From Marsupella aquatica (taxonomy: Eukaryota; Plantae; Marchantiophyta), in contig OZ316899.1 of the NCBI GenBank assembly GCA_973895155.1, positions 4,529,241 to 4,593,240 on the forward strand: a DNA stretch of 64,000 nt, read 5' to 3'. Below, in pieces: positions 1 through 24,838 of the stretch. The translations under genes and the position numbers were made by a program. How positions within the stretch are numbered: position 1 is the first letter of the stretch; every line of letters begins with the position of its first letter. Under the pieces are notes generated by a model that was not told where the DNA came from, made no database searches, and saw only the letters and a list, made by a program, of their open reading frames with translations.

Positions 1-6
1 CTTAGT

Positions 7-696: not shown

Positions 697-712
697 CACT
701 AGTACATTTTTG
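697..712 (+). repeat. CACTA left terminal inverted repeat
   Basis: CACTAGTACATTTTTG preceded by TSD ATC. Confidence 0.93.
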
Positions 713-3341: not shown

Positions 3342-3827
3342 CAGATCTTCAGGTTATCGGATATAATGTGCGTAATTGACAACATCGGATATTGTCCGAT
3401 GTTGATTACAACGGAGATGTTTTTTGTAATAGAATGCTACGGACATGAATTGCGTAAGGTAAAGAATCGGAAACATTTCTGAAGCGTTCAATATTGGACC
3501 TTTCTTTTGGAACATTGGACGAGGGGTCCGATGCTCCCAATATCGGATGTGAGTGTTCCGATAGTTTTGATATTGGACAATTTCTGCGATTGAGCCTTTT
3601 GTGCTCCAATGCATATCCGATGCAAGTTTCATCAGATAGACCATTGGACACTGGTTATCTTGAGGTTCTTAGTTGAGTGGGGTTGAGAGAAGTATTAGAG
3701 ATACTTTATGGAATATGTTTTATGCAAGAGTGGACATTGAGAAACAAATATAGTGCCGAGAAATATATAATGTCGGGAAAATAAACACAAATATGGTAGG
3801 GGGCTAGCTATAGTTGCTGCTTACTAG

Positions 3828-6160
3828 CTAAGTGGTGGAGGGGATGTCATCATCTTCCACTACAACTACGTTGGGTCTATCTTGGACTATGGATCGTGAT
3901 CGAGGGATATATGGCATCACAATAGACCAATTTGAGTCATCCAGACAAGGTAGGTAAAAACATTGCTCAAGGTGATGTGGGAATGCAAACGGATCTGAAG
4001 ACCTCCAATTTGAGCTGATAACACTTGTCTTCAATCGAGTAAATCCGCATGCATCATCTTCACATGTACGATTGTGGCCCACAAGATTCATCTTGAACCA
4101 TTTGCACTTCAATACCACTTCCTCCAATGAAAGTAGTATGTGCATGGTACTTCACAGTTAGGATCTCCTCAATCTTTCCATAATGAGCGATAGTTTACCG
4201 AATAGGATTCCTGTCCGATGTGCTGCTCTGTGAATCCTGGGTGAACCAACCCATGACCCCACAATCTTGTGTAGTTGCCCTATTCTCATCAAGTCGTTCC
4301 ACATGAAAGTGTCTTCCCTTGGACCACATGGCAGTCCGAGTTGTGACTATAAGTAGTGGACCATGAACAAGGATACGAAGCTTATCAGTCACCTCTGGAT
4401 AATGCAATACACTCTCCCCTGTACCCACCAAGGCATCCACTTCTAACAATTTTGACTTCATGTATGGGTGAAACTTAGGAAATATCCGTGGTCATCGACT
4501 ATTTTGCTTCTCTTCCTCATAAAACGATGTCCACTCCCCTACGAGGTGTTTACAAAAGACAGTAAACAGGAAACAGGATTTAATAACAGAAATTGGTAAC
4601 AGGAAAAAAAACTGGTAACAAGAAAATGGGTGAAAATTTTTTTTGATTTTTTTTTTGATTTTTTTTTTAGAAAAAAAAAGAAATTATTTTTTGGTCGACC
4701 TTTTTTTTTTGCTAGCGCTCGGCGCTGCTAATAGTAGCGCCCAAAGCTAGCCAAAAATGTTGCATTGTTAATTTTTTTTGGAAATAACATGTTTTTGAAG
4801 ACATTTTTAAATTGTGATTTTTCCTGGTAACAGTGATTTTTTCCTGGTAACAGCATATTAAAAACAGGAAAAAAAATTCTATTTACCTGTTTCCTGTCTC
4901 CGTCGCTATACCCTCCCCTACAACCTCTAGTGAGTTGTAGAACATAAATGTTATGTGTTGCAAACGCTCCGCTGAGCTTAAGAGACGCTCTTTTGATGCC
5001 CCAGTGAGTCTTTCATCCTCGTAGTCCGCCTCTCGTGCCGCCTCATCTATCCATCCCCTAGGAGCATTTGGATCTAGTGTGTCAACTATGTTTGTACAAT
5101 AAAACATACTCTCTACTCCAAGATGACGCTCTGCAATGCTACCTTCCATCCTAGCGCAATTAGAGACATACAATTTCATCACTCCCATATAACGCTCTAC
5201 CCAATACATCCATCGACAATGCACTGGGCCTGCAATTGCAACCTCACGCACTAAATGTATGAGAAAATGAACCTGACCATCAAATATTGAGGGAGGGAGT
5301 GCCTTCTCCAACTTGCACACAACTCTACTCCAAATGTCTCCATTGCGGTAATGTCATCCTCTCGTACCTCCTTTTGACATACCCATCTCAAAAGCTTGCC
5401 CAATGACCAAAGGGCATCACGAAGTTCCTCACTACCCAATTTAATAATTGCAACTAGAATGACATGTTCAAGCAACCGATGAAAATAATGTGTTTTCAAG
5501 TAAGATGGCCATTTTGGAGAATCATCTCCGCCAAATGCTTTCTGGAGATTTGCCCCATAACCTGTGGGAAACCTCATTGATCCGATACGTCTGCGAAACT
5601 CAGTGCGCTCTGCCCTACTCAAAACCCAAGGAGGATGGATGTTGGGGGGTCACCAGGGGGGTCCAAAGATGGCCAAAAACCAAGAAGACTATGCATCCCC
5701 ATCTCCTCACAACTTTCTCTCTAGTTGTGGTTCTTTTCCCCATATAGATGACAAATCAATGGTCTGCCCACATTCCCCTCAATGTGCATCGGATCTAACA
5801 AGTGATTAATGGGCAACTCTGACCAATATGGCAATTGTGACAATGCAGAGAAACGGGTCATGCCACATCGGAGAATTTGTAATGGATCATCTGGGTCTTG
5901 AACTCTTTCCCATACCTCTCTCCAATATGTTGGACCCTTTTGCTGAGGTTGAGGACGAGTACCGGGTTGGCCATCTTCAGTATCATACAAGAAATGATCA
6001 CTCCTCCAAGGATGGTCTTCTGGAAGATATTTGGTATGGCCAATGTAAACTATCTTACGCAAAGTACTTGACTTGCGTTTTGCCACACCCTCCAAATCTG
6101 GTCCGCACGAAGGGCAAGCTCTATAGCCTGATGTTTGCAATCCAGAGATATATCCAAACC
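3828..6160 (-). pseudogene. CACTA TnpD-type transposase, central and C-terminal exons (Transposase_21 end, DUF4218-like, DUF4216-like); stops and frameshifts
   Basis: Motifs GYRACPSC...YIGHTKYLPEDHPWR...LPYWSELPINHLLDPMHIEGNV; LEKALPPSIFDGQVHFLIHLVREVAIAGPVHCRWMYWVERYMG; TTQDCGV; VVLKCKWF...DPFAFPHHLEQCFY...W. Intron ~4524-4886. In-frame TAG and frame breaks near 5720, 5630 and 5320. Confidence 0.9.
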
Positions 6161-6237
6161 CTGCGCTTGATCAATACACAACCAGCCAATGAAAGTAAGT
6201 TAAATGATACAAATTATAACCAAAAAAATTACTTAAT

Positions 6238-6401
6238 TGTTGTGTGACAATGGAGAGACTTGCAACTCGCTATTGTGTTCCATTATGGGTGTGACTTATA
6301 TAGTCACCATAGGGTTACATGTTGGGGTTGGTGTTAACCCATGTTACCCCTTCAGGATAGGGTTAGGGGTTAACCATGGTCTAGAGTAAATGGTTACAAC
6401 A
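6238..6401 (-). repeat. Copia 3' LTR (164 bp)
   Basis: Identical to 11862-12025; PPT adjacent. Confidence 0.97.
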
Positions 6402-6410
6402 CTTCCCCTT
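6402..6410 (-). promoter_or_regulatory. Copia polypurine tract
   Basis: Minus strand AAGGGGAAG immediately before the TG of the 3' LTR. Confidence 0.85.
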
Positions 6411-6763
6411 GGAGAGTTTAGGGGTATAAAATCACCACACTACTAACCCTATGTTTATTTTTGGTGCTACCCCATTAAAACCTTCTGCTTTCTTCATAAG
6501 GAAAAAGGGTTCTAGCCACCATTAGTAGGATTTTCTTAAATTTGCACTAAGGTGAGTCTACCTTATAATTTGTCCAAATGTAAAGTTTAATTTGGGTCCC
6601 CTATTACTAAAACTACTTCCCCTTAGTTTAAATGGGGTGTTTACGATAATAATTATTCTATCTTGTATTGGTATGAAAAATCGTATTCTGTCTATGTATA
6701 CAGGAACGAAAGTTTTAGGTTGCATCGTCGTCGAGTCGGCTGTCGTCTGTCGGCTCGAGCTGC

Positions 6764-9700
6764 TCATTCAAACTGTGGAGTTTCTCTCGTTTGTGTGTCG
6801 ACGGGCAGGCGCAATGTCGACAATCTTGTCATGCCGATCGCTGCTACGTGCTTTCGATGGAGGCTGGCGGGTAATGGCTTCGTGAATAGATCAGCACAGT
6901 TCTCCTGGGAGCTCTTCCAGTGCACATTGATGTGCTGCCCTATCTGTTCATGGGTAAAGAAAAATTTTGGGTCGATATGCTTCGTGCGGTCTGTCTTCAT
7001 ATATCCTGCATTGATTTGGTCCACGCAAGCTTTGTTATCTTCATGGATAATCGTCGGTTTGGTGAGTAGTGGCTTACCAGTATTCTTGCGGATGTGGTTT
7101 ATGATGTTTCGAAGCCATAGCGCTTCTCTTGTTGCTTCGTAAAGAGCTATTACTTCTGAATGATTGGACGATGTGGTAGTCAAGGTTTGTTTTGTACTGC
7201 GCCATGATATTGCTGTGTTGCCTTGCAAGAAGACATAACCAGTCTGAGATTTCGAGTCATGCGGATCGGATAGATATCCAGCGTCCGCGTATCCTTGCAG
7301 TTCATCCGGGTTATCATTGGCGAAATACAGGCCCATATCCATGGAGCCTTGAAGATAACGAAATAGTCGTTTGATGCCGTTCCAGTGGCGAATAGTAGGT
7401 TGGGCGCTATGTCGTGCCAAGAGACTCACTGCAAATGAAATGTCGGGACGGGTGTTGTTCGCCAGATAGAGGAGAGCTCCGATTGCAGATAAATAAGGCT
7501 TTTCTGCATCAAGAAGTGGTTCATTTTCTTGTCTCCTTCTAAACATATCTTTAGTGGTGTCCAGGGATCGCATCTCCATGGGAGTCGAGACTGAGTAAGC
7601 ATTCTGCATGTTAAACTGTCGAAGAATTTTCTTTGTGTAAGTTGATTGACTAATAAACATACCTTGTGGCAGGTGGTCGAACTGTAGACCGAGGCAATAC
7701 GTCGGTTCTCCCAGTTCTTTCATTTCGAAGATGCCCTTCATTGTATTAATAGTCTGCTTTAATAGCTTGGGGGTGCCGAACAGATTGACGTCATCAACAT
7801 ATAGTGCTAATATCACGAACTCAGGTGCTAGGTGTTTTATAAAAATGCAAGGGGCGAGGTCGTCATTTATAAAGCCAAGAGTCTGCATCTTAGTTTTGAA
7901 TGTCTGATACCAGATGCGTCCGCTCTGTTTCAGTCCGTTTATTGATTTAAGGACTTGCACAGCAAATGCCTGCTGTCCAGTCCCATATTTACCTGGGTAC
8001 TGGAGTGGTTCTTTGAGTGTGTTGCCACTGCTCAACACTAGGCCTTTAATGTCATCATCAGGGACAATCTGTCGAAGTCCCGACTTCATGTCCTGACTTA
8101 GGGTATGTATATTCTTCCCCTGGATGTGCTCTACCACTCTTTCGAGCAATTCCTTTGGAGCTTTCATATATATTTCGGAGTCTAAGACTCCATATAGGTA
8201 CGCAGTTACCACGTCCATGAGTATGTTTTTGAGTTTATGCTTTCTTGAAAAAGATATTAAGTACCTAAAGGTAGTTACATCCATAACTGGCGAATAGGTT
8301 AAATCGTAATCCCTTCCAGGGATTTGGGTGTAGCCTTTCGCTACAAGCCTTGCTCGATATCTTATGACATCTCCTTGGGCATTGCGTTTTCTAATGAATA
8401 TAAAACGACTATCTGTATAGTCATTCTTTGGTTGTACAACCTTAACTGGGCCGAATACTTGTCTTTTGATTAATGCGTCCATTTCTGTATTGATAGCCTC
8501 TCTCCACTGTGGCCAATCGGGCCTTTTCTGTGCTTCTTTGATTGTATAGGGATCAGGTGTATCATTTGAGATGGATTGGGCTATATGATAAGCAAACTGC
8601 TCGTCTATTATTGTGTTTGATCGAGCATAAATGTGTCCTGTGTGTGTGTATTGAATAGACATTTCTTCATTATCTGGTGCCCTCTTTTTCTCTGGTTCGA
8701 TACTGACCAGATTAAATGTGGTTTCAGTATTTACCGTTTGTGTACGTCTCTGGCGAGGGCGAGAATCAGTGGATCCTAGTGGGCGTCCTCTCTTCGCCTT
8801 AGGTAAGGTTTCCTTTGCTTGAGTTGGCAGCAGCTGAATCCGAGCTGGGGTATTGACTGCTTCAACATGTGATCTGGTCACATTTGCTGCGTCATTGAAA
8901 GCGTCAGGAATCTTTTCCAACATTTCGTGGAGATGTAATAAGCGCCTTACCTCCTCGTCTGCACTTTGAGTTCTTGGATCTTGATTGAGTAGATTTCTGC
9001 TATTCCAATTGAGCTGTACTGGTGTTATGTCGTGTGATGTAGTTGGCGCCTTAAGTAATGAGGGGAAAATTTCCTCATAGAAATGGCAGTCAGCGTGTCT
9101 TGCTTTAAATACATCAGCTGTGCTAGGTTCCAGATAGCGGATAATAGACGAGGAGTCATGGCCAATATAAATACCTTCTCTCCTCTGTGGGCCAAGTTTG
9201 GATCGATGTGGCCCAAGGATGGGTACCATCACTTTACATCCGAATACTCTAATGTGTGAAAGGTCAGGGGGTAAACCGAATGCAAGGTGATGAGGGGTTT
9301 TAGTATTAAATGCTGACGGCCGATACTTAAGCAAAGTTGTTGCATGGAGGACAGCGTGTCCCCATGCTGAAGGTGGTAGTTTAGAGTTCAATAGAAGTGG
9401 CCTTGTTATCATTTGAATCCTTTTTATGACTGACTCTGCTATGCCGTTCTGGAAATGGACGTAAGGAACTGAGTATTCAATGTCGATCCCCGCTGTCATA
9501 CAGAAGTCGTCAAATGCTCTGGAGGTAAATTCCCCTGCCCCGTCCACTCGCAATTTCTTAATTGGACAATCTGGGAATTGTACTCGAAGTTTTAATAAGT
9601 TGGCTAAGATTCTGGCAAAGACCAGGTTACGAGTAGAAATTAATGAAACGTGGAGCCATTTAGTTGAAGAGTCTACAATGGCTAAAAAATATCTGAAAGG

Positions 9701-11404
9701 CCCACTTGGAGGGTGTATTGGCCCGCAGACATCAGCATTTAGACGTTCCAGGAATTTAGGGATAGTATAGATGGTCTTTTGTGTAGCTGGGCGTGTACTC
9801 AGCTTCCCCTGAGAACATGCAAGACATTGCTTATGATTTATAGATGGACGCACTCCTTTAGGGATTCCTCGTGAGTCCTTGATGATGCGACGGTACATAT
9901 TTATTCCCGGGTGCCCCAGTCGACAGTGCCAGAGGTATGTAAGATTATTTGATTCTGCTGTGGCATAGTTCGCTGTTATTGGGGCTGCATATAAACCCGG
10001 GGGTATTAGAGGTAGTATCTCTTTGATTTGAATTCCATCTGTGGTCATGGCTACTATTTGCAAAGTAGGTTTCTGCTGGATCATTGCTGTGCGGAGTTGA
10101 TAATTATTAGCAACAACGTCTTTGAAGCTAATCAAATTTCGAGTAGCTTTTGGTGCAAAGATAGCTGCTTCGATGTTAATGACTGTTCCTTGGGGAAATT
10201 TGACAGTAGCCTTTCCTGTTCCTTCCTCAATCTTATTCGTACCTGATATGGTTGTCATTATCCTGGCAGATGGAGTGATATCTTGGAAATAACTCCTATC
10301 TTTTAGGATAGTGTGGGATGTCCCACTATCAATGATACCTAAATTGGGATCGTTGGAGGAGGGATATGGTGGCTCTTCTGTCACCAGATGAGCTTCAGCG
10401 TTGGATTGGTCTATCGTATCATTTTCTTCTCGATAAGATGGTAGCTCCTCTTCCAATTCCATATAGTTGCCATCTGGATTTTGCTTTAACTTAGCTCTTG
10501 CTTCTGAGTGCCTCTTAGCCGCTTGGTCAGAAGCCCAGCAGTCTTTCTTTAGGTGGCCAATTTTTCCACATCTATAACACATTCGGTCTTCTCGTGTGTT
10601 GTCAGATGATTGGGCGTGACCTCTGCCGCGTCCTCTTCCTCTACCCCGGCCACGGCTTCTGCTGCCTCGACCTCTGGTATTTTCATACTGATTTCCCCTT
10701 CCACTATAATTTGAGTTGCGACCTCGTCCTCTATATCCACCTCTTTGTGTACCCCGGCCTCTTATATTTCGTTGTTGGTCTTCTGGGGCATTGTAATTAA
10801 TTTCTGGTTTCTGTGGTATAGGTGCAGTGCCTGGTGGTCGTTTCCTTGCATTCTGTATAGAGACAATTTGTTGTTTCTCCTCTACTAGGAGATGTGCAAT
10901 TAAGTTAGAATAAGTTGTGAATTGCATATTCCTGTATTGAGTTCCCAAGGCGATGTTGGCCTCTGGGAAAGTACTCAACGTTTTATCGATTTTGTCTAAG
11001 TCTGCAACTGGGTGGCCACACATCTCCAATTGAGATGTAATACGAAATAGAGAACTATTATAATTTGCTATAGAAGTATGATCCATGACACGTAGATTAA
11101 ACCAATCCCTGCGGGCTTCTGGGAGCCAGACCTCTCGCATATGGTCAAATCGAGCTTTTAATTTGTCCCATAATAGACGGGGATTAAGATCACTCATATA
11201 TTGTGTCTTCAGTGATGGTGTCAAATGCTGTCTAAGTAGAAATACAGCTTTGGCCTTCTGTTGCAATGTTAAATTGTCATCAGTAATTAATGTATCCTCT
11301 AGTTGTATTGATGCGAAGTAGGTCTCTACATCTATTGACCAGGTTAAGTAATTATTGCCATCTGCCAATAGGGCTGGAAAGTGTAATTTCTCCAGGGTGG
11401 CCAT
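6764..11404 (-). CDS. Copia Gag-Pol polyprotein (gag, CCHC knuckle, protease, integrase, RT, RNase H), 1546 aa, uninterrupted
   Basis: MATLEKLHFPALLADGNNYLTW (Bianca-type gag start); CYRCGKIGHLKKDC; IIDSGTSHT; WHCRLGH...CLAC; DVCGP/VDGAGEF/NGIAES (DDE); ARLVAKGY, LYVDD; YADAG...SEVIAL...EDN...ADLFTK. Confidence 0.97.
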   Translation of the reverse strand: MATLEKLHFPALLADGNNYLTWSIDVETYFASIQLEDTLITDDNLTLQQKAKAVFLLRQHLTPSLKTQYMSDLNPRLLWDKLKARFDHMREVWLPEARRDWFNLRVMDHTSIANYNSSLFRITSQLEMCGHPVADLDKIDKTLSTFPEANIALGTQYRNMQFTTYSNLIAHLLVEEKQQIVSIQNARKRPPGTAPIPQKPEINYNAPEDQQRNIRGRGTQRGGYRGRGRNSNYSGRGNQYENTRGRGSRSRGRGRGRGRGRGHAQSSDNTREDRMCYRCGKIGHLKKDCWASDQAAKRHSEARAKLKQNPDGNYMELEEELPSYREENDTIDQSNAEAHLVTEEPPYPSSNDPNLGIIDSGTSHTILKDRSYFQDITPSARIMTTISGTNKIEEGTGKATVKFPQGTVINIEAAIFAPKATRNLISFKDVVANNYQLRTAMIQQKPTLQIVAMTTDGIQIKEILPLIPPGLYAAPITANYATAESNNLTYLWHCRLGHPGINMYRRIIKDSRGIPKGVRPSINHKQCLACSQGKLSTRPATQKTIYTIPKFLERLNADVCGPIHPPSGPFRYFLAIVDSSTKWLHVSLISTRNLVFARILANLLKLRVQFPDCPIKKLRVDGAGEFTSRAFDDFCMTAGIDIEYSVPYVHFQNGIAESVIKRIQMITRPLLLNSKLPPSAWGHAVLHATTLLKYRPSAFNTKTPHHLAFGLPPDLSHIRVFGCKVMVPILGPHRSKLGPQRREGIYIGHDSSSIIRYLEPSTADVFKARHADCHFYEEIFPSLLKAPTTSHDITPVQLNWNSRNLLNQDPRTQSADEEVRRLLHLHEMLEKIPDAFNDAANVTRSHVEAVNTPARIQLLPTQAKETLPKAKRGRPLGSTDSRPRQRRTQTVNTETTFNLVSIEPEKKRAPDNEEMSIQYTHTGHIYARSNTIIDEQFAYHIAQSISNDTPDPYTIKEAQKRPDWPQWREAINTEMDALIKRQVFGPVKVVQPKNDYTDSRFIFIRKRNAQGDVIRYRARLVAKGYTQIPGRDYDLTYSPVMDVTTFRYLISFSRKHKLKNILMDVVTAYLYGVLDSEIYMKAPKELLERVVEHIQGKNIHTLSQDMKSGLRQIVPDDDIKGLVLSSGNTLKEPLQYPGKYGTGQQAFAVQVLKSINGLKQSGRIWYQTFKTKMQTLGFINDDLAPCIFIKHLAPEFVILALYVDDVNLFGTPKLLKQTINTMKGIFEMKELGEPTYCLGLQFDHLPQGMFISQSTYTKKILRQFNMQNAYSVSTPMEMRSLDTTKDMFRRRQENEPLLDAEKPYLSAIGALLYLANNTRPDISFAVSLLARHSAQPTIRHWNGIKRLFRYLQGSMDMGLYFANDNPDELQGYADAGYLSDPHDSKSQTGYVFLQGNTAISWRSTKQTLTTTSSNHSEVIALYEATREALWLRNIINHIRKNTGKPLLTKPTIIHEDNKACVDQINAGYMKTDRTKHIDPKFFFTHEQIGQHINVHWKSSQENCADLFTKPLPASLHRKHVAAIGMTRLSTLRLPVDTQTRETPQFE

Positions 11405-11848
11405 AGTATCTCAAATCTGTAACAAATCACTGTCCGCGTTCTGATTAATATCAAATCTATGTCGTTCTCAATTACTTCAATCACTCGTGCCTTTTTATCC
11501 ACGGGATTTTCCTTGGCGATAAAAGAAACTCAGGATTTCCGTGGCGGAACAATAAGATATAAAAAAAAATTGAGTCGAATTTGAACGGGAAAACACTATT
11601 TCAAAGTGATTCATGCCTCTCCGATAGTGTCACTAATCAATTATATACGGATTGTGTGTTTTCCGTAAGGATTCGTGGACTATTCAGAGGATCCGAAGTT
11701 TAAATTATGGTGTGATTTGAATCGGTGGCAGTTACTGATGTGGGGTGGGGCTAAAAACGCAACATTGGAAGTCAATTTCTTTGTTTGAAAGCCGTACTCC
11801 AATTATCCTACCTTAACTCCAAACTGAAAAAAAAAATTTAGATGCTAT

Positions 11849-11861
11849 CGCGCTGATAACG
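11849..11861 (-). promoter_or_regulatory. Copia primer-binding site, half-tRNA type (CGTTATCAGCGCG)
   Basis: Directly follows the 5' LTR on the minus strand and lacks the TGG (CCA-end) complement. Complementary to the anticodon arm of plant tRNA-Ile(AAU/IAU) as recalled (CGUGCUIAUAACG), with one G:U pair. Confidence 0.65.
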
Positions 11862-12025
11862 TGTTGTGTGACAATGGAGAGACTTGCAACTCGCTATTGT
11901 GTTCCATTATGGGTGTGACTTATATAGTCACCATAGGGTTACATGTTGGGGTTGGTGTTAACCCATGTTACCCCTTCAGGATAGGGTTAGGGGTTAACCA
12001 TGGTCTAGAGTAAATGGTTACAACA
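11862..12025 (-). repeat. Copia 5' LTR (164 bp)
   Basis: Identical to 6238-6401. Confidence 0.97.
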
Positions 12026-12079
12026 TTAATAAGCATGGTGTAAATAGATAGCAATGGAAATAAGGGTTTAATACCCTAC

Positions 12080-13223
12080 CTGGAAAATCATGCATGGTCC
12101 AGATAAGAATGGCCTTCATGGTAAATGTGCGGGATAAACCTCCAATGTTGTCACGTCCGTCATAACAATCCACCCCTCTCCAAAGTTTCAAAAGCTCATC
12201 AATCAAGGGTTGCAAGTAAATGTCAATCTTTTTTACTAGCTTGTTGAGGACCAGGGATGATCATTGACAGTAGTAGATGACCTTTCTCCATGGCCATCCA
12301 TGGAGGGATATTGTAGTTTGTGAGAACTACAGGCCATACTGAATATGGCTTAGCTTTACCTGCTAATGCAAAAGGACTGATACCATCTGCTGCCAAGCCA
12401 AGTCGAACATGTCGCGGATCAGTTTTGAACTCACCTCATCTGCCCTCTACAAATCGATTGGCAGGAGAGTCTACCATCATCCGCATGGTACTAGAGTCTG
12501 TACCCATATCCAAACAATGTTGTGAGTGCTAGACCATATACTCAGCCAACTCTGCACAACGATATTGATTGCACAATCGAGGGATGAGAGGAAACTACCG
12601 CATAACCTTTTGAGGCACCTTCCCCGTCAACATGTCATCACGGAACCGTGGCTTCTCACACATAGGAGATATAATTGCATTCTCATGCTCACCCCTGAAA
12701 AGAATGCAATCATTCACACATGCATGTATCACTTCATATTTTAGGCCAATGGACTTCAACACCTGTTTAGCCTCCTTCCAAGAGCTTGGCATGTTGTTGC
12801 CTGGTGGTAAAATACGATCATGTAGGGTACGAAAAGTAGGTTGCTTGCCCCATGTCTTTGTTGCACATTCAACAACAACATTATTGCTGAGAGCCGAGAT
12901 AGCCTACTCCCCTCAAATATGCGAGTACGAGCATGACGTTGAGCCTCTTCCCATTCCTTCTGCTGCCCCCCCCTAGAGACATGCGGATGAGTGTTGTTGT
13001 CATCCTGGCTACCCATGTCCTCCATACCAATGTCTGCATCATCGTCATAGAACTGGTCCATGAGCTCATCCATGGCCCTCTCCTCGTCAACATGATCTTT
13101 GGTTGGATTGCCCCCCTCATGCTGTACCTCAGTCTCCTCCCCACGATTGGCCACCATGGCCTCAACAAGGTGTTGCCGCATAGCTCGTGATATTACCCCA
13201 ATATCAGGCACTACATATTGGTT
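12080..13223 (-). pseudogene. CACTA TnpD-type transposase, N-terminal/Transposase_21 exon(s); frameshifted
   Basis: IFEGSRLSRLSAIMLLLN; MPSSWKEAKQVLKSIGLKYEVIHACVNDCILFR; QPLIDELLKLWRGVDCYDG...WTMHDFPG. Donor G|GTAGGG at 12080/12079 joins in frame to acceptor CAG|GG at 6161/6160, giving DFPGFGYISGLQTSGYRAC. Confidence 0.9.
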
Positions 13224-13338
13224 CTATCATACAACATCCATGTAATGTCATCAACATCAATCTTGCCAACAATCTCATTAATCCAACATTAGAAATGGAA
13301 AATAAATTTCAGATATATATATATGTAAGCCCAAGAAA

Positions 13339-13968
13339 CTAAGTTGGACGAGAACGTAGAGACAATTTTGGTGCATCCCAGTCATAATCACACAATAACT
13401 CCTCTCCCGCTCTAATGGTCCTAATGGCCACTGTCATGATGTGGTCATCCATATGTTTCATAAAATATGGGTCTCTAGGTGGACCAAACATTTGGATCCA
13501 CTCTACATTAGCCTCCAAATCTCTACCTCTACCTGTGGTACTATTGATGTATCCTGCTAAATTTCCATTTCTAACAGGGTCACCGTCAATCATCCGACAA
13601 TGCCACGGCCTAGTGAACACCTTGTCTGGGTCTGAGTCCATCCTCAATGCATACACCCCCCAACTTGGGTGTTGACACAACAAAATGTTCCAACTCTTTG
13701 CATTATATACAGCCCCAATATAAGGGAAAATGTGGTCTCCATCGTAGCCACGTCTCCATGGCTTTGGAGGGACAACAATGTCTTCCAAAGCATATAGACC
13801 ATATCCTATATCAGCACCAATAGAGGACTTCTTCACTATCCAAGGACGGCCCCATATCTCCACAGGTTCATCAATAGGAATGTAATCTGGAAATTTGAAG
13901 ACACTGGGGAAAAGTCTTTCAAGACGTCTGCAGCCCTGCCAGTGAGATAGGATACTCCAAATCGGCCC
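13339..13968 (-). CDS. SET-domain (lysine methyltransferase fold) exon carried by the CACTA element; 209 open codons, 5' part of the gene decayed
   Basis: Translated motifs in the right order: WIVKKSSIGADIGYGLYALEDI (motif I, GxG), FPYIG, IDGDPVRNGNLAGYINST (GNxARFINHS-like), ANVEW, IMTVAIRTIRAGEELLCDYDW (AxRxIxxGEELxxDY). Frame open from the TGA at 13969-13971 to the stop at 13339. Confidence 0.88.
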   Translation of the reverse strand, partial: GPIWSILSHWQGCRRLERLFPSVFKFPDYIPIDEPVEIWGRPWIVKKSSIGADIGYGLYALEDIVVPPKPWRRGYDGDHIFPYIGAVYNAKSWNILLCQHPSWGVYALRMDSDPDKVFTRPWHCRMIDGDPVRNGNLAGYINSTTGRGRDLEANVEWIQMFGPPRDPYFMKHMDDHIMTVAIRTIRAGEELLCDYDWDAPKLSLRSRPT

Positions 13969-14368
13969 TCAACGCCAATGTAATCTACATTTGTTGGAGG
14001 ATGATCACTACCTAACACCCCCTCCCGGATGTCTATGTGGTCCACAGGCTCATACTGCCATCTACGTCTATGAGACCGTGCTCGTGTACGTAGGACTCTT
14101 GAAGTCTCAACCTCTAGCAGAGATACTGGTTCTCCCTCTACATGCTCATGTATGGGGATAGGAGCTGGGGGGCTAAGAGGAGGATGGGCAGGGGGGCTGC
14201 AAGCAAGTCTCTAGCCCTTGCTAGGAATCCTTCTAGCCACACAACCTCATCAACCAAAGGAGGTGGGGTCTACGGGGCACCTATTTCAGCACACAATAAA
14301 TTAGTGTTATTTAAATGCAAGCCCAATTGGAGTTTCATGAATGGAATTAAAGGGGAGACATATATTAC

Positions 14369-14598
14369 CTGGCTAGGCAAGTACCCTGGCGTATCACCCT
14401 CATGACGGCCATAGTTCTCAATGTGCTCACAAGTCTCCCAGGCATGTCGGACCACAAGCCCCTTGCATCTCACACACCAACAAGGTATGGGCCTTAGTGG
14501 AGCATGAGGATGCTCAAGAGCAGGGGGTGGAGGAACCTCCCCCTCTGACGAGCTCGTGTCTGAGCTGAATCCGACGTGGAACTATCAGATGTAGACAT
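14369..14598 (-). pseudogene. First coding exon with transposase-associated zinc motif (PF13963-like); one frameshift near the 5' end
   Basis: ATG at 14598. IPCWCVRCKGLVVRHAWETCEHIENYG has the C-x-C-x2-C-K-x8-E-x2-E-H-[IL]-x3-G spacing of plant CACTA N-termini. Ends at donor CAG|GTAATA (14369/14368). An 88-bp AT-rich intron runs to acceptor ATAG| at 14281. Confidence 0.7.
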
Positions 14599-15932
14599 CT
14601 ACATATCATACACATCCAACATGTAAGGCGGATTCAACAACTTATCATGTTTAAAACCACAGTTAAAGAGATATATAAACATCAATTGCCCTACCTCAAT
14701 GATACCCGCGCTTTGCCGTGCCTACTGGGCTGTATTCTCTACACACAAGGTGTGGGATATCCAAAATCTTTGCAGGGTGGAGATGAATATGGTTACACAA
14801 ATGCTGCATAAATGCAAAAAAGTACTTGACTGACTTTTGGCACACGATATATCAAACTTGCCAAAGCAGACCTCAATGTTCCAATCGAAAATGGATGGAT
14901 GGGCCGGGGAATTACATCATACCTCATGGATGCGCGGTCTCACACTGTGCATAGTGCATTGTCCAAGAACAAAACCCTACCTAGCTACCCCCCTCAACCC
15001 AAAAAAAACAAACCTAGCTACCCCTCGATCAAAAGCTAGGTACTGCACATAAAATCCAATCACAACCATTAGCGTAACAAAGGCTTAACATTATCCTCAA
15101 AAAATGTCTAAAAATATCCTATGTATTAAAACCCTATACCAATAAATCCCCAAACCCCTCAAAGCCCTAACTTTAGTCCTTCAAAGAGAATTGGGATCAA
15201 TTATAGTAAAAGAGTAAATCTAGGTACCAGTTACTAGCCAAAACACCTTGACTTATCCTTGCATCCATCACTCAATGTTGAGCAAGTTAAGGCCCTATAA
15301 TTACATTACTATACAGCTTAGCTTTATAAATTTAGGGTGCAATAAATTAAGCATACAATCACAACCATATTTCAGTTATCTTAGGAAATACAAAGTCATG
15401 AACTAACCCCAAAATTGTAGTTGCAAAGAAGGAACTTGCAAGAGGCCGGGTAACATATACACAATATGCCATCCCGTTCACGGAGTTACCTAAAAAAACC
15501 TGATATATTCAAAAATGTCCACCAAAAGTGACTACAACACTCCCTTCTATTACCCCACCCAATTACTTAATTCCATGCTCCACATACAAACCCAAACACC
15601 CAAACTAAACCCAAAGTAAATAGATTTGACCTCCTATGGGACCAAAACATGGAATCCGTTATAGCTGATCGAGGGGTCCGATACTAAAACAAACGGAAGC
15701 AGCATCGTAAAAGCAGGAGAAAGAAAAGCAAGGAGGGGTCCGAAGCAAAACGAATCGGAAGGTCCGATTGTAGGTCCGATGCTTTCGGCTTTGGACGTTG
15801 CGTTGCATAAAGTATCAGAAATGGCAGACTTGTTTTCAAAAAATAAGTCCCGATGCGGATGCGAAGATCCGGGCATCAGGCCAAGCTTTGCATTCCGTGT
15901 TTTGCGAGGCCGGGAGGCTCAGGTAGACGTCG

Positions 15933-17623
15933 GTGGGCAAGGACAGAGACATGGTGGGAGGAGGATCAGGTGGTGGGGACGGGGCTGGAACCTCTCGGCC
16001 CTATGATGAGATTATGAGGGAGATTTTTATGAGTAGGGCAAGGCTAAGTGCTGAGGATGCAGAGAGAGTTGTGCCACTTCTTCAGACCTTGATTGATGGA
16101 TCCAGGATTGAGGCAGAGAAAGCTGCAGCTGCAACCATTGCTGCAGAGAAAGCTGCAAAGAAGAAGTGAAAGGAGGCAAAGAGAGGCAAGGAAGATGGTG
16201 AGGAATCCCTCTCTCCCCGAAAAAGAGAGAGGAAGCTTCACAAGGCAGCTAAGGAGGCTGAGAAGAAGAGAGTGGAGGAGCTAAAGTGAAAGGAAGCTGA
16301 GAGAGCTCTGAGGCCTGAGCTAGCCCTAAACTCAGGTGGCTCCCCAATGCCGAGAGGATACAATCTCTTCCGCAGCCAGTTCAAGCAGGTGGTGAAGGCC
16401 AATTTGGGGCCATTAGATTACTGGGGAAGGAAGACTGAGGAGGAGAAAGGTCGAATTTGAGAGCAAGTGAAGGAGCAATTCAAGAATGGGGCCTACCTTG
16501 ATGACAGGTTCTTGAATAAGAGGATATAAGCTTCACTTTCAGACATGCAAAATCATCAGAGAGAAGTTCAAGAAGTACCTTGCTGATTTTCCGATTGATT
16601 CAGAGGTGGTCAGGGAGCAGGGCTGTCCAGATGTGCTCTCCCCAGATGAGTGGGCAGCTTGGCTTGAGGAGGAATTAGCAATCCGAGCCTGGCAAAAAAA
16701 GAGACAATGGGACCACGAAATCAGCTTGGCAAAGGAGAAGCGGAAGGTTGGGGAGGAAATTGACATCCTCCCCCTCCAACAAAACCTACGGCAGTGGGGA
16801 GCTCAAGCAATACAATTAAAAGAGCCACCCAAAGACATCATCAAAGCATTGGAGCGAGTCCAAGGGCGGCCCATCGTCACTCACCGCATGGGGCAAGGAG
16901 GCTCCAATTGACTAAAAGCAGAGTTTGTAAGTGCCTTCTCCCTCCTCCCTAGCTCCTCCCCCCCAACCACCTGACCTTCTCTTGCGAAGAGTGACTCAAT
17001 TTCTGCTGCCGAATGCCTTTGTGCCGTTTCAGCCCGATGTTTTTTGCTCTCGGGACTGTTCTATCCGATACTCATCCAAAGCTTTTAGCATCGGACCTAG
17101 TATCGGACCTATTGTTATGCCATTTAAGGTTACCGGGATCCGATACTATTCTGTTGCTTTAAGTATCGGAAGCGGCATCGGACCCCTCGTAAGAACAATG
17201 AGTTTTTTAAAATGTTTCTCTTTCACTCAATTCCACTTTAGGAGTACGGTAGGGGTAGGGGTTTGCATTCTTCAGTACCCTAAGAAGGCATGGGACCCCT
17301 TACAAGAATTGGGAAAATTTGGGCCGATGCAAAGACTAGTTTTCATGCTAATGGGTTTCTCGTTTGGTATTGTGATGTGGCAGGAGCGGGATTGGGGTCG
17401 ACCTATTGGGCCGTCAGAGAGGGAGTTAGCAAAGAGGGATGGACCCCGAGCTCTTGAGCTCCACCTTGAGGAGGAGCTGGGAGAGGTAATTGGTGTTGAA
17501 TTGGCCCTATATAGATTCAAATTGTTTTTGGTTGTAGTCAATATTAGAGAGCTTTCAAGGAACTATGTTTTCAAATGCAATTTAACCCTACTTATGTATT
17601 GTACAGGATGAGGAGACAGGGTC
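15933..17623 (+). pseudogene. CACTA TnpA-like (Ptta/En-Spm ORF2-type) gene, 5' exons, divergent from the transposase; several CGA>TGA and CAA>TAA stops
   Basis: Continuous decayed frame ...YWGRKTEEEKGRI*EQVKEQFKNGAYLDDRFLNKRI*...KFKKYL...CPDVLSPDEWAAW...THRMGQGG. Donor TTT|GTAAGT at 16927, further exon ~17276-17486, acceptor TACAG| at 17606. Confidence 0.6.
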
Positions 17624-20600
17624 TGTGACGCCGCCGGTACGGCGGTTAATGAGTGATTCGGTCTAACTGCGCTCGGCACGCGCGTTAGGAGTGTCTTAGG
17701 CTGCTATTATTAGCATAACAACAGTATTTAGGTAATCATTATGGGTAGGATATCATTAGGCAATAAGGGGGAATTCAGGTTCGGACTGGCGGCTGGTCGC
17801 TATTCGCACACCCGGGTTACGAGCGTGGAGGGGCCCCTCCGTCGGGTCCGTATAACGAACTTAAGGAAACGGCCACTGACACGCGCTGACTCAGACCGGC
17901 GGAGTGGCCGACACACCACAAGCGTGAGCGGTTCAGCCTATGGGCGTCGAGGAAACGTCAGGGGATCGACAAGCCCTCAAGGTATAAAAGGGGAGCCAAC
18001 CCTTTGTAGTGCACCAGTCCATCAGTCCACGTGCCAGCTTTGACCCTAGCTCTCTCGTTCGCTCTAAGTCGCCACTACTATCTCCTCTGAATGTCGCACA
18101 TGATCCTCTCCAGCTCGGCCATTCGATTCTGGACGCAGTTCCTATCTACCGGAAGGCACTTGGCCGACTCATTGAAACACGCCAACCCGCGCCGATACGA
18201 AATCGAACGCGAGTACGAGAGAGCCATCCGCCTAGCAGGACGACACCACTACATCCTTAACTTTGACTACCCGTCTCAGAGCGAGCTTTATCGACCAGCA
18301 GAGGTATCCGGGTACTTCTTCAACGGAGACAAATATATCGGGTTCTGGGAAGCATTGCTTCGGCTTCCGGACGAGGTCTTCAATATCCCGGGTATGATCG
18401 ACTTGCAACGACATCACTTTGACCACATCCCTGCTCAGGTTCGGGCTATCATCAACAGCGAGTCCATCACTACCCGTTCGACAAGGTCGTCTGCACTCGC
18501 TTCGGAGAACTTCTACCAGCACCTACAGAGCTTCATAGGAACTCGGCCAGCAACCAACATGACCAACTCAGTCATACCCGTACCCGTACCCATACAACCT
18601 CAGGCTCAGCTTCAGCTTCAGCCTCAGCCGCAGCCTAGCCAAACCCCACCACCGATCGCCCAGCCAGCACAAGTATGCTCCGTCATCAATGCTGTGGATC
18701 TTAGCGATGACGACGAGGCTACCCTACCCTTGACCAGGCGGCCCAGAGGAACAACCGCTCAGGGGGCCGACACTATATCGTCCCCACCCCCTGCTCTGAC
18801 CCCAGGAGCGGCCCCGGCAGACAACATGGTGACCGTGGCCGACCCGGGCCCGTTACTAACGGCACTACCCAGGCCCGTTACTAACGGCACTACCCAGGCC
18901 CGATCGGGAGGATGGGGAGGTGTCACCTTCCCCGAGCCAGTCACGGGGGAAGAAGAGGAAGGAATCCGCCACTGCATCCGGGTTACCGTTGGCCACGGTA
19001 GCCGTGGCCAAGGTGACGATGCACCGCATGGGGGAAAACGTTCACAAAAACATCCTCCATCCCAAGCATGCGGTGTACCTGAAGACTCAGGGATTCGAGC
19101 ACCTCGCCTCCCTCCCCTGGAACACTTGTAGGTACTACGGGGAGGACATGATGGAGTTCGTCAGGAATTATGACGACGCGAGTCAACATACTCGGCTGCA
19201 GGGAAGGAGTATGTCCCTCACGGAAGAACGGCTCAGGATGATCTTCGGGTTATCCAAAGGTGACCATCGAGTCGAATCACGGGCTCCCGAGGGCAAGGGA
19301 GCCAAGTACCAATCTTCAAGTTTTCCCTCAGAGGGAGCAGTGGACAACGGGTTCATGATGAAGACCTGCCTCATCCCCGAGATAGCTGAGCGACTGGAGT
19401 TCCAGAGGTACGCCCTCCACATGATGGAACCCCGGGGGGAGATCTCCGCCGCCCAGGTTATCCAGGTCGAGAACTATCGACCTAGGAGGTGGGCGTCGTA
19501 CTTCGCTAAGAAATTCCATGAAGAGATGGAGCGGCAAAGGAAGACGCTGTACATTGGCGGGAAGGCGTATTTTGCTAGCCACATCGAGATCATTCTTGAG
19601 TGGTACGCCCGGTTTGATCGATGAACCCTTCCCCGTGTCAATGTTACAAAGCTAGTCCCAGCTAGGTGGGTTTTCCCGGCCTTGGAGAGACGGCCCCAAC
19701 CCGAGGCCCGAAGTCCAGCGGACACGCCAGCTTCACCCACCCCACCTCCACAAGTAGCTGTAGTCGTAACCAAAGAGGTACCGGATGGGTCGGTCGTCGC
19801 AACCGTTGATGCGATCCAACAAGCCGGGCTAAGTACAGAAGTCGGTACGACGGAGGTCTTACCTGAGCCAGGGTCTCCCAAAGACCCACCGGTGGCTATT
19901 CCGGAGAACCGGACATTGCTGCAGGAGGACACTCCAGCCCCTTCCAACGTTACGTCCCCAGGGCTGGACGTCACTGCCCCGGCCCCTGCGCGTGTTGATG
20001 TCTGCCCGTGCCCAACTCTGGACAGGCACAACCTGGACCACCCGGAACTCTTCGTACCGGGTACATTTCTGAACGGGCTTCTAGGAGATTTCTCTCATCA
20101 AATTGCCCGGGATACCGGGGAGTTCATGGCCCGAAAGGTAGCCTGTTTCTTCAATCAGGAGTTGGTTGCCGCAGTAAAGGCAGGTCGGGCCCAGTCAGAG
20201 GCCCTTCAGAGGATAGAGCGGTACCGGGTGGAGTCCGTGTACCTAAAGAACGAAGTTGCGGCTCAAGAGGCTGAGCTTCTGCAACTACGACCCAAGGTTG
20301 CAGCTGCCGATGAGTTGTTAGCAAAGGCGCACGCTCTTACCGCCTTAGCCGAACAGGCCAAAGCTGGGAACGAGGCCGAGATTACACGACTCCGGAACCA
20401 GCTTGACAGTTTGAAGAATCAAACTGTCACCTGGCAGAAAGACCTGGAGGAGGCCGAGGAACGGGCCCAACGGGACACGGCGGAGATAGCCACGCTACAG
20501 GCCGAGGTGGCGCGGCTCCAAACCGAGGCCGAGAAGCAGGACCAGCTAGCGGGTAAACTGACAAGTGACGCCCAGCAGCTGGAGGAGGCTTGTCAGGAGG

Positions 20601-21648
20601 CAGCAGAGGAGACGGACGCGGCGAGTTGAGAGAACGAATCTCTGCTGGACCAGGTCCAGCTCCTCAAGGCGGACAATGACAGGCTTCGAAGGCAACGGGA
20701 TGGCCGCTCCCATTCGGGCGGCTCTGGCAAGCGTGCCAGGCATTAGCAGCGGAGTAGGAATAGATTAGGATTAGGACTGGCTTAGTCAGGCTCTTGGGAC
20801 AGGCACCTGCCTTAGGTACAGCAGCACTGCCGTGCTATCCAGCCTGCGTAGATTAGGATCTTCTAATAAGACACAGCCATTTTCCGGCCTGACTGTCAGC
20901 TTAGTTAGGACCTTAGTCAGCGAATCTTCGGCGAGAGGACACCCCGTCCCTCGTCCCTTAGTATTTAGTGCACCCCTCGGTAGAGGCAAGGGGGGGGGGG
21001 TTTTTAGTTGCAGAGTTGGGCGTCCGCGGTATGTGAGGGGAGTCCCGACCTCTGGGAATGAAAGAGTACCAAGGGGAGGGGGTAGGACTAAGCTCGTCGG
21101 GCGAGTGCGGAGCCGGGCTCCGTTGTAGTGTGCACCCTCGGCCTTGAACCTGTTCATTCCGGGGCTGTCGGGTCAACTAAGTGTACGCATATGTTCCCTT
21201 TGTAGTAAAATCCTTTCCCATCATTTTCCTTCGTGTAAATCGAGATTGTATGCATGTGCGCATGTATGTGTGTGGGTTTCTCGTATATGGGTGGCAGCGC
21301 CAGGCCGAACGCACTACCCGAGACGTGCACAGGGTGCAGCCTGCGGGTAAGTGGTTGCGAGCACGGGTTGAGGACCTGTATCATCGAATCCGGATCGAAG
21401 GCGGACAGCACGAAGGCTTAGAAGCCCTTAAGCCGGGGTCGATCCTGCTATCGACTAAGGTACGTTCCGGCGGTGGAACACAAACCATACCTAGGAGGTG
21501 TCCATATTTAGCAGTATGCGCACTTAGCGCTAGTTTACGAGAATAAGGTGCATTACGTGCTTCCCTTCCTGCCCGAACCCTCAGATTTACGAGGGATGTG
21601 CCCGTCTAAGCTGAAGTCTGAGTTAAGGCCGCAGCCGATGACGTGACA
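17624..21648 (+). repeat. Gypsy A 5' LTR (4025 bp)
   Basis: Direct repeat of 43307-47307. The 24-bp length difference is accounted for by visible indels (25-bp duplication/6-bp deletion near 18850-18900, a G-run, and a 1-bp indel). Confidence 0.95.
18091..20750 (+). pseudogene. LTR-internal accessory ORF of gypsy A (5' copy; pieces 18091-19131, 18920-19624, 19682-20629): unknown N-domain, plant-retroelement accessory domain, coiled coil
   Basis: Pieces join into one frame when compared with the 3' LTR copy. TATAAAA at 17983 upstream. GFEHLASLPW...EFVRNY...LT...IFGL...NGF...TC domain, then an EAQ/K-rich coiled coil. Confidence 0.8.
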
Positions 21649-21661
21649 TAGCCTTTGTTTT

Positions 21662-21680
21662 TGGCGCTAGATGGAGGGGG
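21662..21680 (+). promoter_or_regulatory. Gypsy A PBS (TGGCGCTAGATGGAGGGGG), tRNA-Asn type
   Basis: Complementary to the 3' end of plant tRNA-Asn(GUU) as recalled (...CCCCUCCUUCUAGCGCCA), 1 mismatch. Lies 13 nt after the LTR end. Confidence 0.7.
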
Positions 21681-21772
21681 CACTCTACATATCGTAGAGG
21701 GGAGACATGTGCGTATTCACCTAGGCAGGATACATCAGGACGTAGTACTAACCATCGCATTTATATGAGTAA

Positions 21773-24700: not shown

Positions 24701-24838
24701 CAACAACCGCCCGAGGCCGAAAACTCGAGACCGAGACATAAGAAACGAGTCTCATGGGATCCATTCCGCAATTGGAGGAAGAAACTCCAATCCCGAGACC
24801 AATCCCGGTTCCACCCATGTACGGAGGAGTTCGGCTAG
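21773..24838 (+). CDS. Gypsy A Gag-protease ORF (1021 aa)
   Basis: Retrotrans_gag-like FKGRHGDDPDEWLDEFE...GEARPWY; knuckles CSKCFQSGHVVQEC and CYNCENPGHFAREC; protease VLVDGGAGVNIM...LLGRPWL. Confidence 0.92.
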   Translation: MPVTHSQATYLRRLTSERESATTTSSDSSDSEDSHSPRRMNIPPGPSGSGSTGPPTVPPPPPPPPPPPPPPMAAAPPMARAAQAPPQISQRSRFHYRPFKGRHGDDPDEWLDEFEATAKANGEDAIKLTVLPGVMRGEARPWYNSLPPRTTWAQFQAALLQEFRAIGSEQRSLLKIGQLRMGKKESLRKFIQKFQKLAAKIRPRPGDALQLTWFLHGLPTNMQFWVRQNNPISMQAAIACAETYRESTYNSRRSQRARRKKGKYETFSDSDSESDDERKKKRKKKKKHRSTSSSSETESSSDSASSTGSSTSSSSGSDSESESRSKKKKRRVKKEGKIKPRARRTIPDPKAAEADKLNKITDRLKALSVHLAEKPMEKKKPSEIRAHAWCSKCFQSGHVVQECPRWKNRVHQVELDDVDNPGPESESTEYFFEDPPDSVYQISTVGVRNLAGRTVYPYPNNGRSFQVISNPSIPPKPGIWRSPICYNCENPGHFARECTKPRRQGDGRGTPLCQVYKTEAHSTANCPLVIAARTSAARPAQAGPATSDAVVQMIAVEWQDDNTEWVNLVDVVEHPDPLDEAECYRVSTRAERKEEKTEEKRRKKQDTTPVQSAIDIPPEKDDDYRRDDPKLFFPRIKELVKKQLEAYEAREYQKAIDKDIKAAETARRQEQEEQEKQEEAKLQPKEDKKENYDIKEDVKSCPVTATVGQLLQNNPQYRRQLRELLMDRRRRRLPRVGIADCNMICEDLGAPDISIEINNCTIKMVLVDGGAGVNIMTEETSVKLGYLTYQPIAQAIRLANGARVLPLGTLTRVLTLVGGVEFYLNFLVMRPVRPSSYPVLLGRPWLYGGRVVTDWGEKELRFGEPTVRVSWAMDDYQGETPQGPEEYDSESSEEEELNMIELISSLFEEDVFGVEATRETHLLNYPRAAIESTPSTSTAGDEEMHEQLVEMEDTAPAKQGSEAASTVAEPRDHEPAQQPPEAENSRPRHKKRVSWDPFRNWRKKLQSRDQSRFHPCTEEFG

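Follow-up and report, generated by a model that had tools for sequence, protein, structure and literature searches.

Introduction

Transposons that carry enzymes for epigenetic marks are rare, and they offer the clearest evidence that mobile elements resist chromatin-based silencing. Among land plants the only well-studied case, to our knowledge, is VANC of the VANDAL elements, which is not an enzyme. It is established that En/Spm makes two proteins from one alternatively spliced transcript, and plant CACTA elements are known to pick up fragments of host genes. VANDAL elements, which are Mutator transposons of Arabidopsis, encode VANC as an anti-silencing protein (Hosaka et al., 2017, as summarised in PMC12730594). 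According to the same article, a SET histone-lysine methyltransferase is also found in HarbingerS elements and in MuDR families of the oomycete Phytophthora (Kojima and Jurka, 2014, Repbase Reports, cited in PMC12730594). Helitrons with SET genes are also on record, and red-algal Plavaka elements of the EnSpm/CACTA superfamily carry an accessory gene, PAG2, that combines an N6-adenine DNA methylase with SET (bioRxiv 10.1101/2025.02.11.637652). Here we analyze a 64,000-nt stretch of the genome of the liverwort Marsupella aquatica (GenBank assembly GCA_973895155.1, contig OZ316899.1, positions 4,529,241 to 4,593,240 of the forward strand; hereafter the window, whose numbering is used throughout), in which an earlier note, made from the letters alone, had placed a CACTA DNA transposon with a SET-domain gene of its own.

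Our results make it highly probable that this SET frame is an integral, old, and selectively maintained accessory-gene exon of a land-plant CACTA lineage (EnSpm; Transposase_21/DUF4218/DUF4216). It is thus a candidate for a chromatin writer encoded by a transposon, even though the window holds a broken copy.

Results

The SET domain and its place in a CACTA element

On the minus strand of the window, 209 sense codons run without interruption through positions 13339-13968 to a TAG stop at 13341-13339, and the frame contains, in this order, WIVKKSSIGADIGYGLYA, FPYIG, MIDGD..GNLAGYINST, and AIRTIRAGEELLCDY. The earlier note had described a 209-codon frame with the SET motifs in order; the frame and all of the quoted motifs were found, with the correction that the strand is minus and that the ancestral frame is shorter. 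Comparison with relatives showed that only the last ~190 codons (13342-13911) are ancestral, while the first ~19 are out-of-frame sequence upstream of a frameshift at ~13890-13908. The Pfam profile search that the note had proposed matched SET (PF00856) at 30.7 bits (E 4.4e-7) in the window frame and at 34.4 bits in an intact copy from the liverwort Calypogeia fissa, both exceeding the gathering cut-off of 22.4. SET was the sole Pfam domain, with no N6-adenine DNA methylase domain beside it, in the window frame, in P0001 (the annotated protein of C. fissa), and in the ten relatives of greatest length.

The window SET carries the S-adenosylmethionine (SAM)-pocket motifs GxG (as GYG) and YxG (as PYIG), and its C-terminal GEELxxDY motif reads AGEELLCDY, including the catalytic Tyr. 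In an alignment of 42 family members, G38, G66, Y69, and N135 were invariant and N117, S124, G169, E171, and Y176 were conserved in at least 90%. In terms of motifs, the second Gly of GxG, the Gly of YxG, and the Asn of PN did not vary, the terminal GEE..Y was at least 90% conserved, and the Asn of the NHS motif was mostly kept (two members deviate). An AlphaFold2 (AF2) model built from this alignment was confident (predicted local distance difference test score, pLDDT, 89.3; predicted template-modeling score, pTM, 0.84), and Foldseek found 317 PDB matches at E<=0.001, of which the best 50, as listed, were SET lysine methyltransferases without exception (template-modeling, or TM, score by query 0.46-0.57). 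The structural check suggested in the note therefore also returned a SET methyltransferase.

The frame lies within well-defined element borders. At the left end (694-710, plus strand), the target site duplication (TSD) ATC (694-696) precedes the terminal inverted repeat (TIR) CACTAGTACATTTT (697-710), which is followed by a subterminal cluster of TCCGAT/ATCGGA hexamers; at the right end (48903-48919, minus strand), the reverse complement of the TIR (48903-48916) is followed by the TSD ATC (48917-48919), with a hexamer cluster at 48001-48916. The two TIRs are identical at 14/14 positions with ATC on both sides, the best result among all CACT..AGTG pairs scanned, and among the pairs listed only the 697/48916 pair had a matching 3-bp duplication. 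Seven copies of TCCGAT/ATCGGA occur in 501-1000 and 11 in 48001-49000, where 0.41 per 500 nt would be expected. Considering the TIR/TSD pair together with the hexamer clusters, we conclude that the CACTA element spans 697-48916, and the SET frame is inside it, as the note had stated.

Occurrence and selection across the family

A word-indexed search returned only eight relatives, the best of which came from C. fissa with 75% identity. An exhaustive profile search of 1.84 billion representatives gave 121 matches at E<=1e-3, including 37 at E<=1e-30. Twenty-eight of the 121 were looked up by name; all were from C. fissa or Riccia sorocarpa or were nameless, and these look-ups comprised transposon-linked copies, unnamed proteins, and a protein designated P0074, with no ordinary host SET family among them. 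An oomycete or red-algal origin was seen neither among these 28 look-ups nor among the named matches of a second profile search. The latter search reached a distant subclade (~28% identity) that includes proteins of two ferns, Ceratopteris richardii and Adiantum nelumboides, and in one contig of this subclade (L015) a SET gene lies upstream of Transposase_21. Related elements that keep the SET gene are present in liverworts and probably also in ferns. The fern-labelled proteins of the distant subclade are P0166, P0172, and P0173 (Ceratopteris richardii) and P0174 and P0175 (Adiantum nelumboides); in one Adiantum protein, a SET N-terminal motif is joined to a DUF4218 transposase domain.

Among 15 loci, which yielded eight related lineages, exon 1, SET, and transposase followed one another in this order on one strand in every genomic context that could be read past the SET gene. 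These contexts were L001 of C. fissa; L002-4 and L005-7; L008 and L011 of Riccia; L009 and L010; and L015 of the distant subclade. Natural intact copies of the family exist, among them the C. fissa protein CAM6082608.1; in C. fissa L001, a 314-aa (amino acid) SET exon and the transposase frames are both intact. Stand-alone SET proteins of 230-340 aa were found in many independent gene calls. Contigs of four public runs covered the SET exon as deeply as the transposase exons (in the thousands) and the intergenic parts far more shallowly, indicating a high copy number. The note had asked whether other members might lack the exon, with the window frame being a near-identical fragment of one host SET gene. 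Neither was found: eight lineages carry the exon in like order and strand, and the 28 matches looked up by name, out of 121 in 1.84 billion representatives, included no ordinary host SET family.

To compare the histories of the two genes, we correlated pairwise identities of SET and transposase among eight elements; the Mantel r was 0.89 (p 2e-4), and the two diverged at like rates (SET 40-76%, transposase 37-79%). Between lineages, the proportion of nonsynonymous differences (pN) was 0.17-0.49 and that of synonymous differences (pS) was 0.57-0.83, and the corresponding rate ratio (dN/dS) was 0.13-0.34 where dS could be computed, values that are rough because dS is near saturation. This comparison among copies, which the note had recommended, indicates that the SET gene is under purifying selection, in step with the transposase. 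Since the gene is common to the lineages, co-diverges with the transposase, and has a pN far below pS, we conclude that its capture was ancient and that selection has kept it within the transposon lineage.

One further relative stands apart. P0074 (CAM6103004.1; C. fissa L014, 10001-11512; paralogue CAM6081997.1) is a 503-aa single-exon protein of the CACTA SET clade, with the motifs WDRWWHIK, LFPYIG, NLAGYINS, and GEELYSTYDW and a Cys/His-rich N-terminal half. It is flanked by the host genes mL59 and FtsH, with no transposase within 10 kb. P0074 could be the donor lineage or a domesticated copy.

Gene anatomy and a proposed splice model

The gene can be read as two exons on the minus strand. 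Exon 1 (14369-14598) begins with an ATG at 14598-14596, specifies a run of Ser and acidic residues followed by a Cys-x-Cys-x2-Cys...His motif (PCWCVRCKG..EHIENYGRHEG), and closes at the phase-0 donor CAG/GTAATA (slashes mark splice sites). An 88-nt GT..AG intron (14281-14368), phase 0 on both sides, leads through the acceptor ..AAATAG/GTGCCC to the start of the SET exon at 14280. The SET exon (13339-14280) encodes, in its N-terminal half, a basic RRRR stretch and a GRFGxSxLTGRA..KDF motif, and the reading frame of its SET domain is uninterrupted between 13911 and the stop. An AT-rich spacer of 115 nt (13224-13338, minus strand) then extends from the SET stop to the transposase acceptor ..GATAG/AACCAA (13225-13224). 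The note was thus right that the frame shares its strand with the transposase and precedes the main transposase exon by ~115 bp: 115 nt separate the end of the SET stop (13339) from the start of that exon (13223).

The transposase is also encoded on the minus strand, in two parts. Its 5' part (12026-13223) opens with NQYVVPDIGVISRAMRQHL after the acceptor, within a conserved start of the form NQ(F/Y)V..RAMRQHL, contains Transposase_21, has at least two frameshifts, and is ended by a Copia insertion. The 3' part (3828-6237) holds the rest of Transposase_21 and regions of DUF4218 and DUF4216 type, with 54-89% identity to the C. fissa copy. Pfam recognized PF02992 in the window fragment (E 2e-9) and the full Transposase_21/DUF4218/DUF4216 set in the C. 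fissa relative.

In the annotated P0001, the homologous exon 1 and SET exon of C. fissa are joined identically. The exon-1 donor was phase 0 in the window, L001, L002, L005, and L009, and the SET-exon acceptor was phase 0 wherever it was read (window, L001, and L005); the SET-exon frame is open upstream all the way to the acceptor. In the window, L001, L002, L005, and L009, a TAG that doubles as the acceptor directly precedes the transposase frame. Moreover, the internal Met of the transposase exon is Ile in L005, and that exon therefore needs an upstream start. These splice phases fit a first exon common to the SET and transposase products.

Fold relatives of the SET domain

The leading fold matches in the PDB were SETD8, LegAS4, MLL1-4, NSD, and G9a, with SETD8 and LegAS4 at E 3e-7 and a TM score by query of 0.50-0.57. 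A profile search of PDB sequences likewise placed LegAS4/RomA at the top (E 5e-5), followed by EZH2 and MLL. By profile and fold, LegAS4/RomA (PDB 5czy, 8sr6, 8swi) and SETD8/KMT5A are thus the closest solved relatives, and they share with the family a GN(L/I)xxYINxS motif without the canonical His and a compact SET without a post-SET zinc cluster. However, identity is 22-23% over the aligned region and common ancestry is shown only at the level of the SET superfamily; in addition, LegAS4 is a secreted bacterial protein with ankyrin repeats and SETD8 is an animal H4K20 enzyme.

The earlier note had been reminded of minimal viral SETs such as chlorovirus vSET, a likeness that proved not to be specific. 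The best viral match (BFVD) had E 1.4e-6 and a TM score of 0.54, no better than cellular SETs (E 3e-7). Although chlorovirus vSET and giant-virus SETs are also small SET proteins of a genetic parasite, the CACTA SET has an N-terminal extension of 60-150 aa and no specific relationship to them. Matches in the AFDB clusters and the viral library were mostly SET-named proteins. Since searches of the AFDB clusters, the viral library, and the ESM Atlas returned generic SET neighbours only, no donor lineage can be named for the SET domain.

State of the window copy

What the window holds of the CACTA element is a dead relic: exon 1, SET, and the transposase are all frameshifted, and Copia and gypsy elements have inserted into it. 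The frameshifts are near 14564 (exon 1), at 14255-14266 and 13890-13908 (N-terminal half of SET), and at two or more places in the transposase; those in exon 1 and SET agree with the note's caveat that the 5' part of the gene is decayed. At 14564 and 14264, family contigs and the window are unequal in length by a single base, and these lesions are therefore specific to the window copy. Comparison of the window (12026-16400) with contigs of runs X1, X3, X4, and X6 showed A>G plus T>C at 58-78 places and G>A plus C>T at 34-55. The window thus more often has A or T where family contigs have G or C, the pattern expected from deamination of methylated cytosine in a silenced copy.

Other features of the element

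Most of the element's length is nested long terminal repeat (LTR)-retrotransposon sequence, with both copia and gypsy elements inside the CACTA. A Ty1/copia element (6238-12025, minus strand) has 164-nt LTRs that are 100% identical, TG..CA ends, and a 5-bp TSD, TTAAT. Its gag-pol open reading frame (ORF; 6764-11404, minus strand) is intact at 1546 aa, and the element has the look of a very recent arrival in the CACTA transposase that may still be competent. A second block of nested LTR retrotransposons (~17624-48000), with gag, zinc-knuckle, and protease ORFs and a GC content of 0.51-0.58, separates the CACTA body from its right end; its borders are approximate, the right one being set by the drop in GC. 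Large plus-strand frames within this GC-rich block occur at 21773-24838, 26649-29243, 30234-32207, and 36503-39862, with a spacing of ~10 kb. Two are gag/zinc-knuckle(/protease) frames and two, of ~860-1120 aa, have weak Pfam matches of coiled-coil type (Relaxase_C, ATG16).

A second gene of the element is divergently oriented (15933-16932, plus strand). It matches no Pfam family, shows 45-52% identity in C. fissa and L005, and may have a TnpA-like role. In the window and in L001 (7363-8560, minus strand), its product has a Gly-rich start, AEDAERVVPLLQ.LIDGS, and a basic or coiled region. TCCGAT/ATCGGA hexamers also cluster at three internal positions: immediately 3' of the transposase (3001-4000), in the stretch that separates the divergent genes (15501-16000), and on the 3' side of the second gene (17001-17500). 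A like pattern is seen in C. fissa (L001 5501-6000, 7001, 8501, and 15001-16000).

With regard to the ends, a TIR scan of 1-6300 against 13900-22000 gave at best 14/25 or less, the true right end lying further out at 48916, and the occurrences of CACTACAA at 3858 and 18004 were rejected as element ends. The same scan found no TIRs for the C. fissa, Riccia, and L009 elements within the fetched flanks, and the TIR word of the window was absent from ten related loci. A 127-nt tandem duplication (7-260) lies just outside the left TIR, and short tandem arrays with a 26-nt period, GCTTCAGCTTAGG-like, occupy 1266-1600 in the left arm of the CACTA.

Discussion

Taking structure and function together, we favour with moderate confidence the following explanation of the SET gene. 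A single promoter, that of the transposase, would give one pre-mRNA that starts with exon 1. Splicing of exon 1 to the SET exon would produce a 230-340-aa SET protein, whose nuclear localization is suggested by the basic RRRR stretch in its N-terminal half, and splicing of exon 1 past the SET exon to the transposase exon would produce the transposase. The two proteins would thereby have an N-terminal Cys/His module in common, following the TnpA/TnpD logic of En/Spm. As an active lysine methyltransferase, the SET protein would act on chromatin at or near the element, most likely on the tail of histone H3 or H4, and would alter the element's chromatin state to the element's advantage; it might do so by opposing host silencing or else by adjusting the element's own activity. 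While the place of the exon in the lineage is the firm part of this explanation, the chain of functional steps (shared-exon expression, a nuclear protein, methyltransferase activity, and chromatin action that favours the element) is tentative, plausible but short of probable.

Several observations weigh against this explanation. In place of the NH(S/C)xxPN motif the window reads YINST...NVEW; Ser replaces His throughout the family, and the note had correctly read NS for the NH of RFINHS. The family SET has no post-SET zinc cluster and the tail after the catalytic Tyr is only 4-15 residues long, so that the lysine channel may need a partner or dimerization. Neither a polyadenylation signal nor a conserved donor was identified after the SET stop. 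Exon 1 had no match in Pfam, and none to the Transposase-associated domain PF13963 even at E<=10; its likeness to the Pfam consensus of that domain is at the level of motif only (CxCxxC..H..G..HEG). Contigs of the four public runs, over 12026-16400, were DNA-like with no canonical splice joints; such joints as occurred were non-canonical, mostly in single contigs, and were not read as introns. Short contigs from Logan, ENA, and JGI were unspliced or degenerate genomic copies. The roughness of the dN/dS values counts here too, and the substrate of the SET protein and the direction of its effect are pure inference.

These points have to be set against other ways of accounting for the gene. It is unlikely, in our judgement, that the SET protein is catalytically inactive or acts elsewhere than on histones, e.g., as a scaffold, as a histone-tail binder, or by methylating the transposase, the second protein, or a host silencing factor. 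The family-wide loss of the canonical NHS His and the missing post-SET module would fit such a role, and non-histone substrates are common among SET enzymes. However, conservation is concentrated on the SAM-pocket and catalytic motifs, the terminal Tyr included, and the best fold matches are enzymes of histone tails. Furthermore, a profile alignment places YINFS of LegAS4, with Phe at the position of the His, against YINS(T) of the family, and RomA/LegAS4 is an active H3K14 methyltransferase (PMC10653858; bioRxiv 10.64898/2026.05.29.728679). Since this nearest solved relative is active with Phe at that position, the absent His is no argument against activity. The shared first exon is challenged by the idea of a separate SET gene, with its own promoter and terminator, that sits inside the first transposase intron and has no exon or coordinated expression in common with the transposase. 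Some called SET genes (P0003, P0002) begin within the SET exon, and exon 1 has no recognized domain. Against this, the C. fissa annotation P0001 joins exon 1 to the SET exon, a GT..AG intron with phase 0 on both sides is present in the window, L001, and L005, and the SET-exon frame is open right up to the acceptor; a separate gene is thus quite unlikely.

A single SET-transposase polypeptide as in SETMAR, made by a splice that leaves the SET exon internally and enters the transposase exon, is very unlikely. Gene predictors did produce such a protein in Riccia (P0063, SET plus Transposase_21), and C. fissa has a phase-0 GTGAGG 12 nt before the end of the SET ORF that is in frame with the transposase exon. 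However, the copy behind P0063 is degenerate, its SET domain being without the N-terminal half, and as an ab initio gene model of such a copy P0063 was rejected as evidence of fusion. In six elements (window, L001, L002, L005, L009, and L010), SET has its own stop 4-15 codons past the catalytic Tyr, no phase-compatible donor is conserved (L005, L009, L010, and the window have no phase-0 donor in the tail), and the many independent gene calls are of stand-alone SET proteins. As for a one-off, Pack-CACTA-style capture of a host SET fragment that evolves neutrally and plays no part for the element, it would draw on the habit of plant CACTA elements of picking up host gene fragments, on the decay of the window copy, and on P0074, which stands alone between C. 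fissa host genes and is a possible donor. It is refuted, with hardly any probability left to it, by the exon's presence at one place in eight lineages (two liverwort classes and the distant subclade), by its co-divergence with the transposase, by a pN far under pS, by invariant catalytic motifs, by the lack of any ordinary host SET family among the 28 matches looked up by name, and by a SET exon covered as deeply as the transposase exons. An ancient single capture as the origin of the gene is likely, and is compatible with the maintained accessory exon that we favour.

In a canonical plant CACTA lineage, selection has preserved a compact SET methyltransferase gene over a very long period, through liverworts and apparently ferns, and the lineage has reached high copy number. 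If the SET protein is active, it would offer a handle on which histone mark a transposon writes on itself, as well as on how the silencing of transposons by H3K9 and H3K27 methylation is subverted in bryophytes. The nesting of SET between exon 1 and the transposase body suggests a simple way for the element to target the enzyme to its own DNA. In a more far-reaching version, which we consider somewhat unlikely as a whole, the lineage would be at least as old as the liverwort-fern split and would encode an active histone-lysine methyltransferase that receives the Cys/His module of the transposase by alternative splicing, is brought to the TCCGAT-repeat ends and the promoter region, and sets a mark that counters host silencing, possibly with a domesticated descendant of the P0074 type. 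If true, plants would have their first demonstrated case of a histone writer that a transposon encodes and that acts in cis. A practical consequence concerns annotation: in liverwort and fern genomes, e.g., those of Riccia sorocarpa, Calypogeia fissa, and Ceratopteris richardii, some predicted SET proteins are products of transposon genes, and a tally of host chromatin regulators should leave them out.

Comparison with known systems

In full-text searches that paired CACTA, EnSpm, or DUF4218 with SET domain, liverwort, or bryophyte, no account of a SET gene in a land-plant CACTA turned up. This agrees with the earlier note, which knew of no described plant CACTA family with a SET domain. What is new is nevertheless less than the note implied, as DNA transposons with SET genes have been described before, among them the Plavaka elements of a red alga, which belong to the EnSpm/CACTA superfamily.

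Among the described systems, En/Spm of maize resembles the present element in being a CACTA in which one promoter and alternative splicing yield the transposase and a second protein, an arrangement that the splice phases would imply here. It differs in that TnpA is a DNA-binding protein rather than a SET enzyme, and the liverwort CACTA has a further, divergently oriented gene. VANDAL offers a parallel in that VANC, too, is an accessory protein of a plant DNA transposon, to which an effect on the element's own epigenetic state is ascribed. However, VANC has no known enzyme fold and brings about sequence-specific loss of DNA methylation, whereas the CACTA protein has a predicted methyltransferase fold. 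In SETMAR, too, a SET domain stands beside a DDE transposase, but SETMAR is a primate host gene in which a pre-existing SET gene captured a transposase downstream to make one protein; the CACTA SET is the mobile element's own and ends at its own stop codon.

Closer parallels come from the DNA transposons in which a SET gene is a family-wide accessory, as it is here, where it lies inside the CACTA borders and is present in eight related lineages. HarbingerS and the oomycete MuDR families likewise have a family-wide accessory SET gene that is presumed to modify the element's epigenetic state. Compared by description only, they have a PIF/Harbinger or Mutator transposase and hosts of another kingdom, while in the CACTA the SET exon sits inside the transposase transcription unit. 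Plavaka comes from the same EnSpm superfamily and shares a conserved SET-containing accessory gene, an ancient association, and a proposed role in aiding proliferation. Its PAG2, however, is one of three accessory genes and fuses a methylase to SET, whereas the land-plant CACTA has, by Pfam, SET only, a transposase of Transposase_21/DUF4218/DUF4216 type, and land-plant hosts. Set beside these descriptions, the SET-only protein, which forms a clade of its own and is nested between exon 1 and the transposase body, appears to represent a separate acquisition in a canonical plant CACTA lineage.

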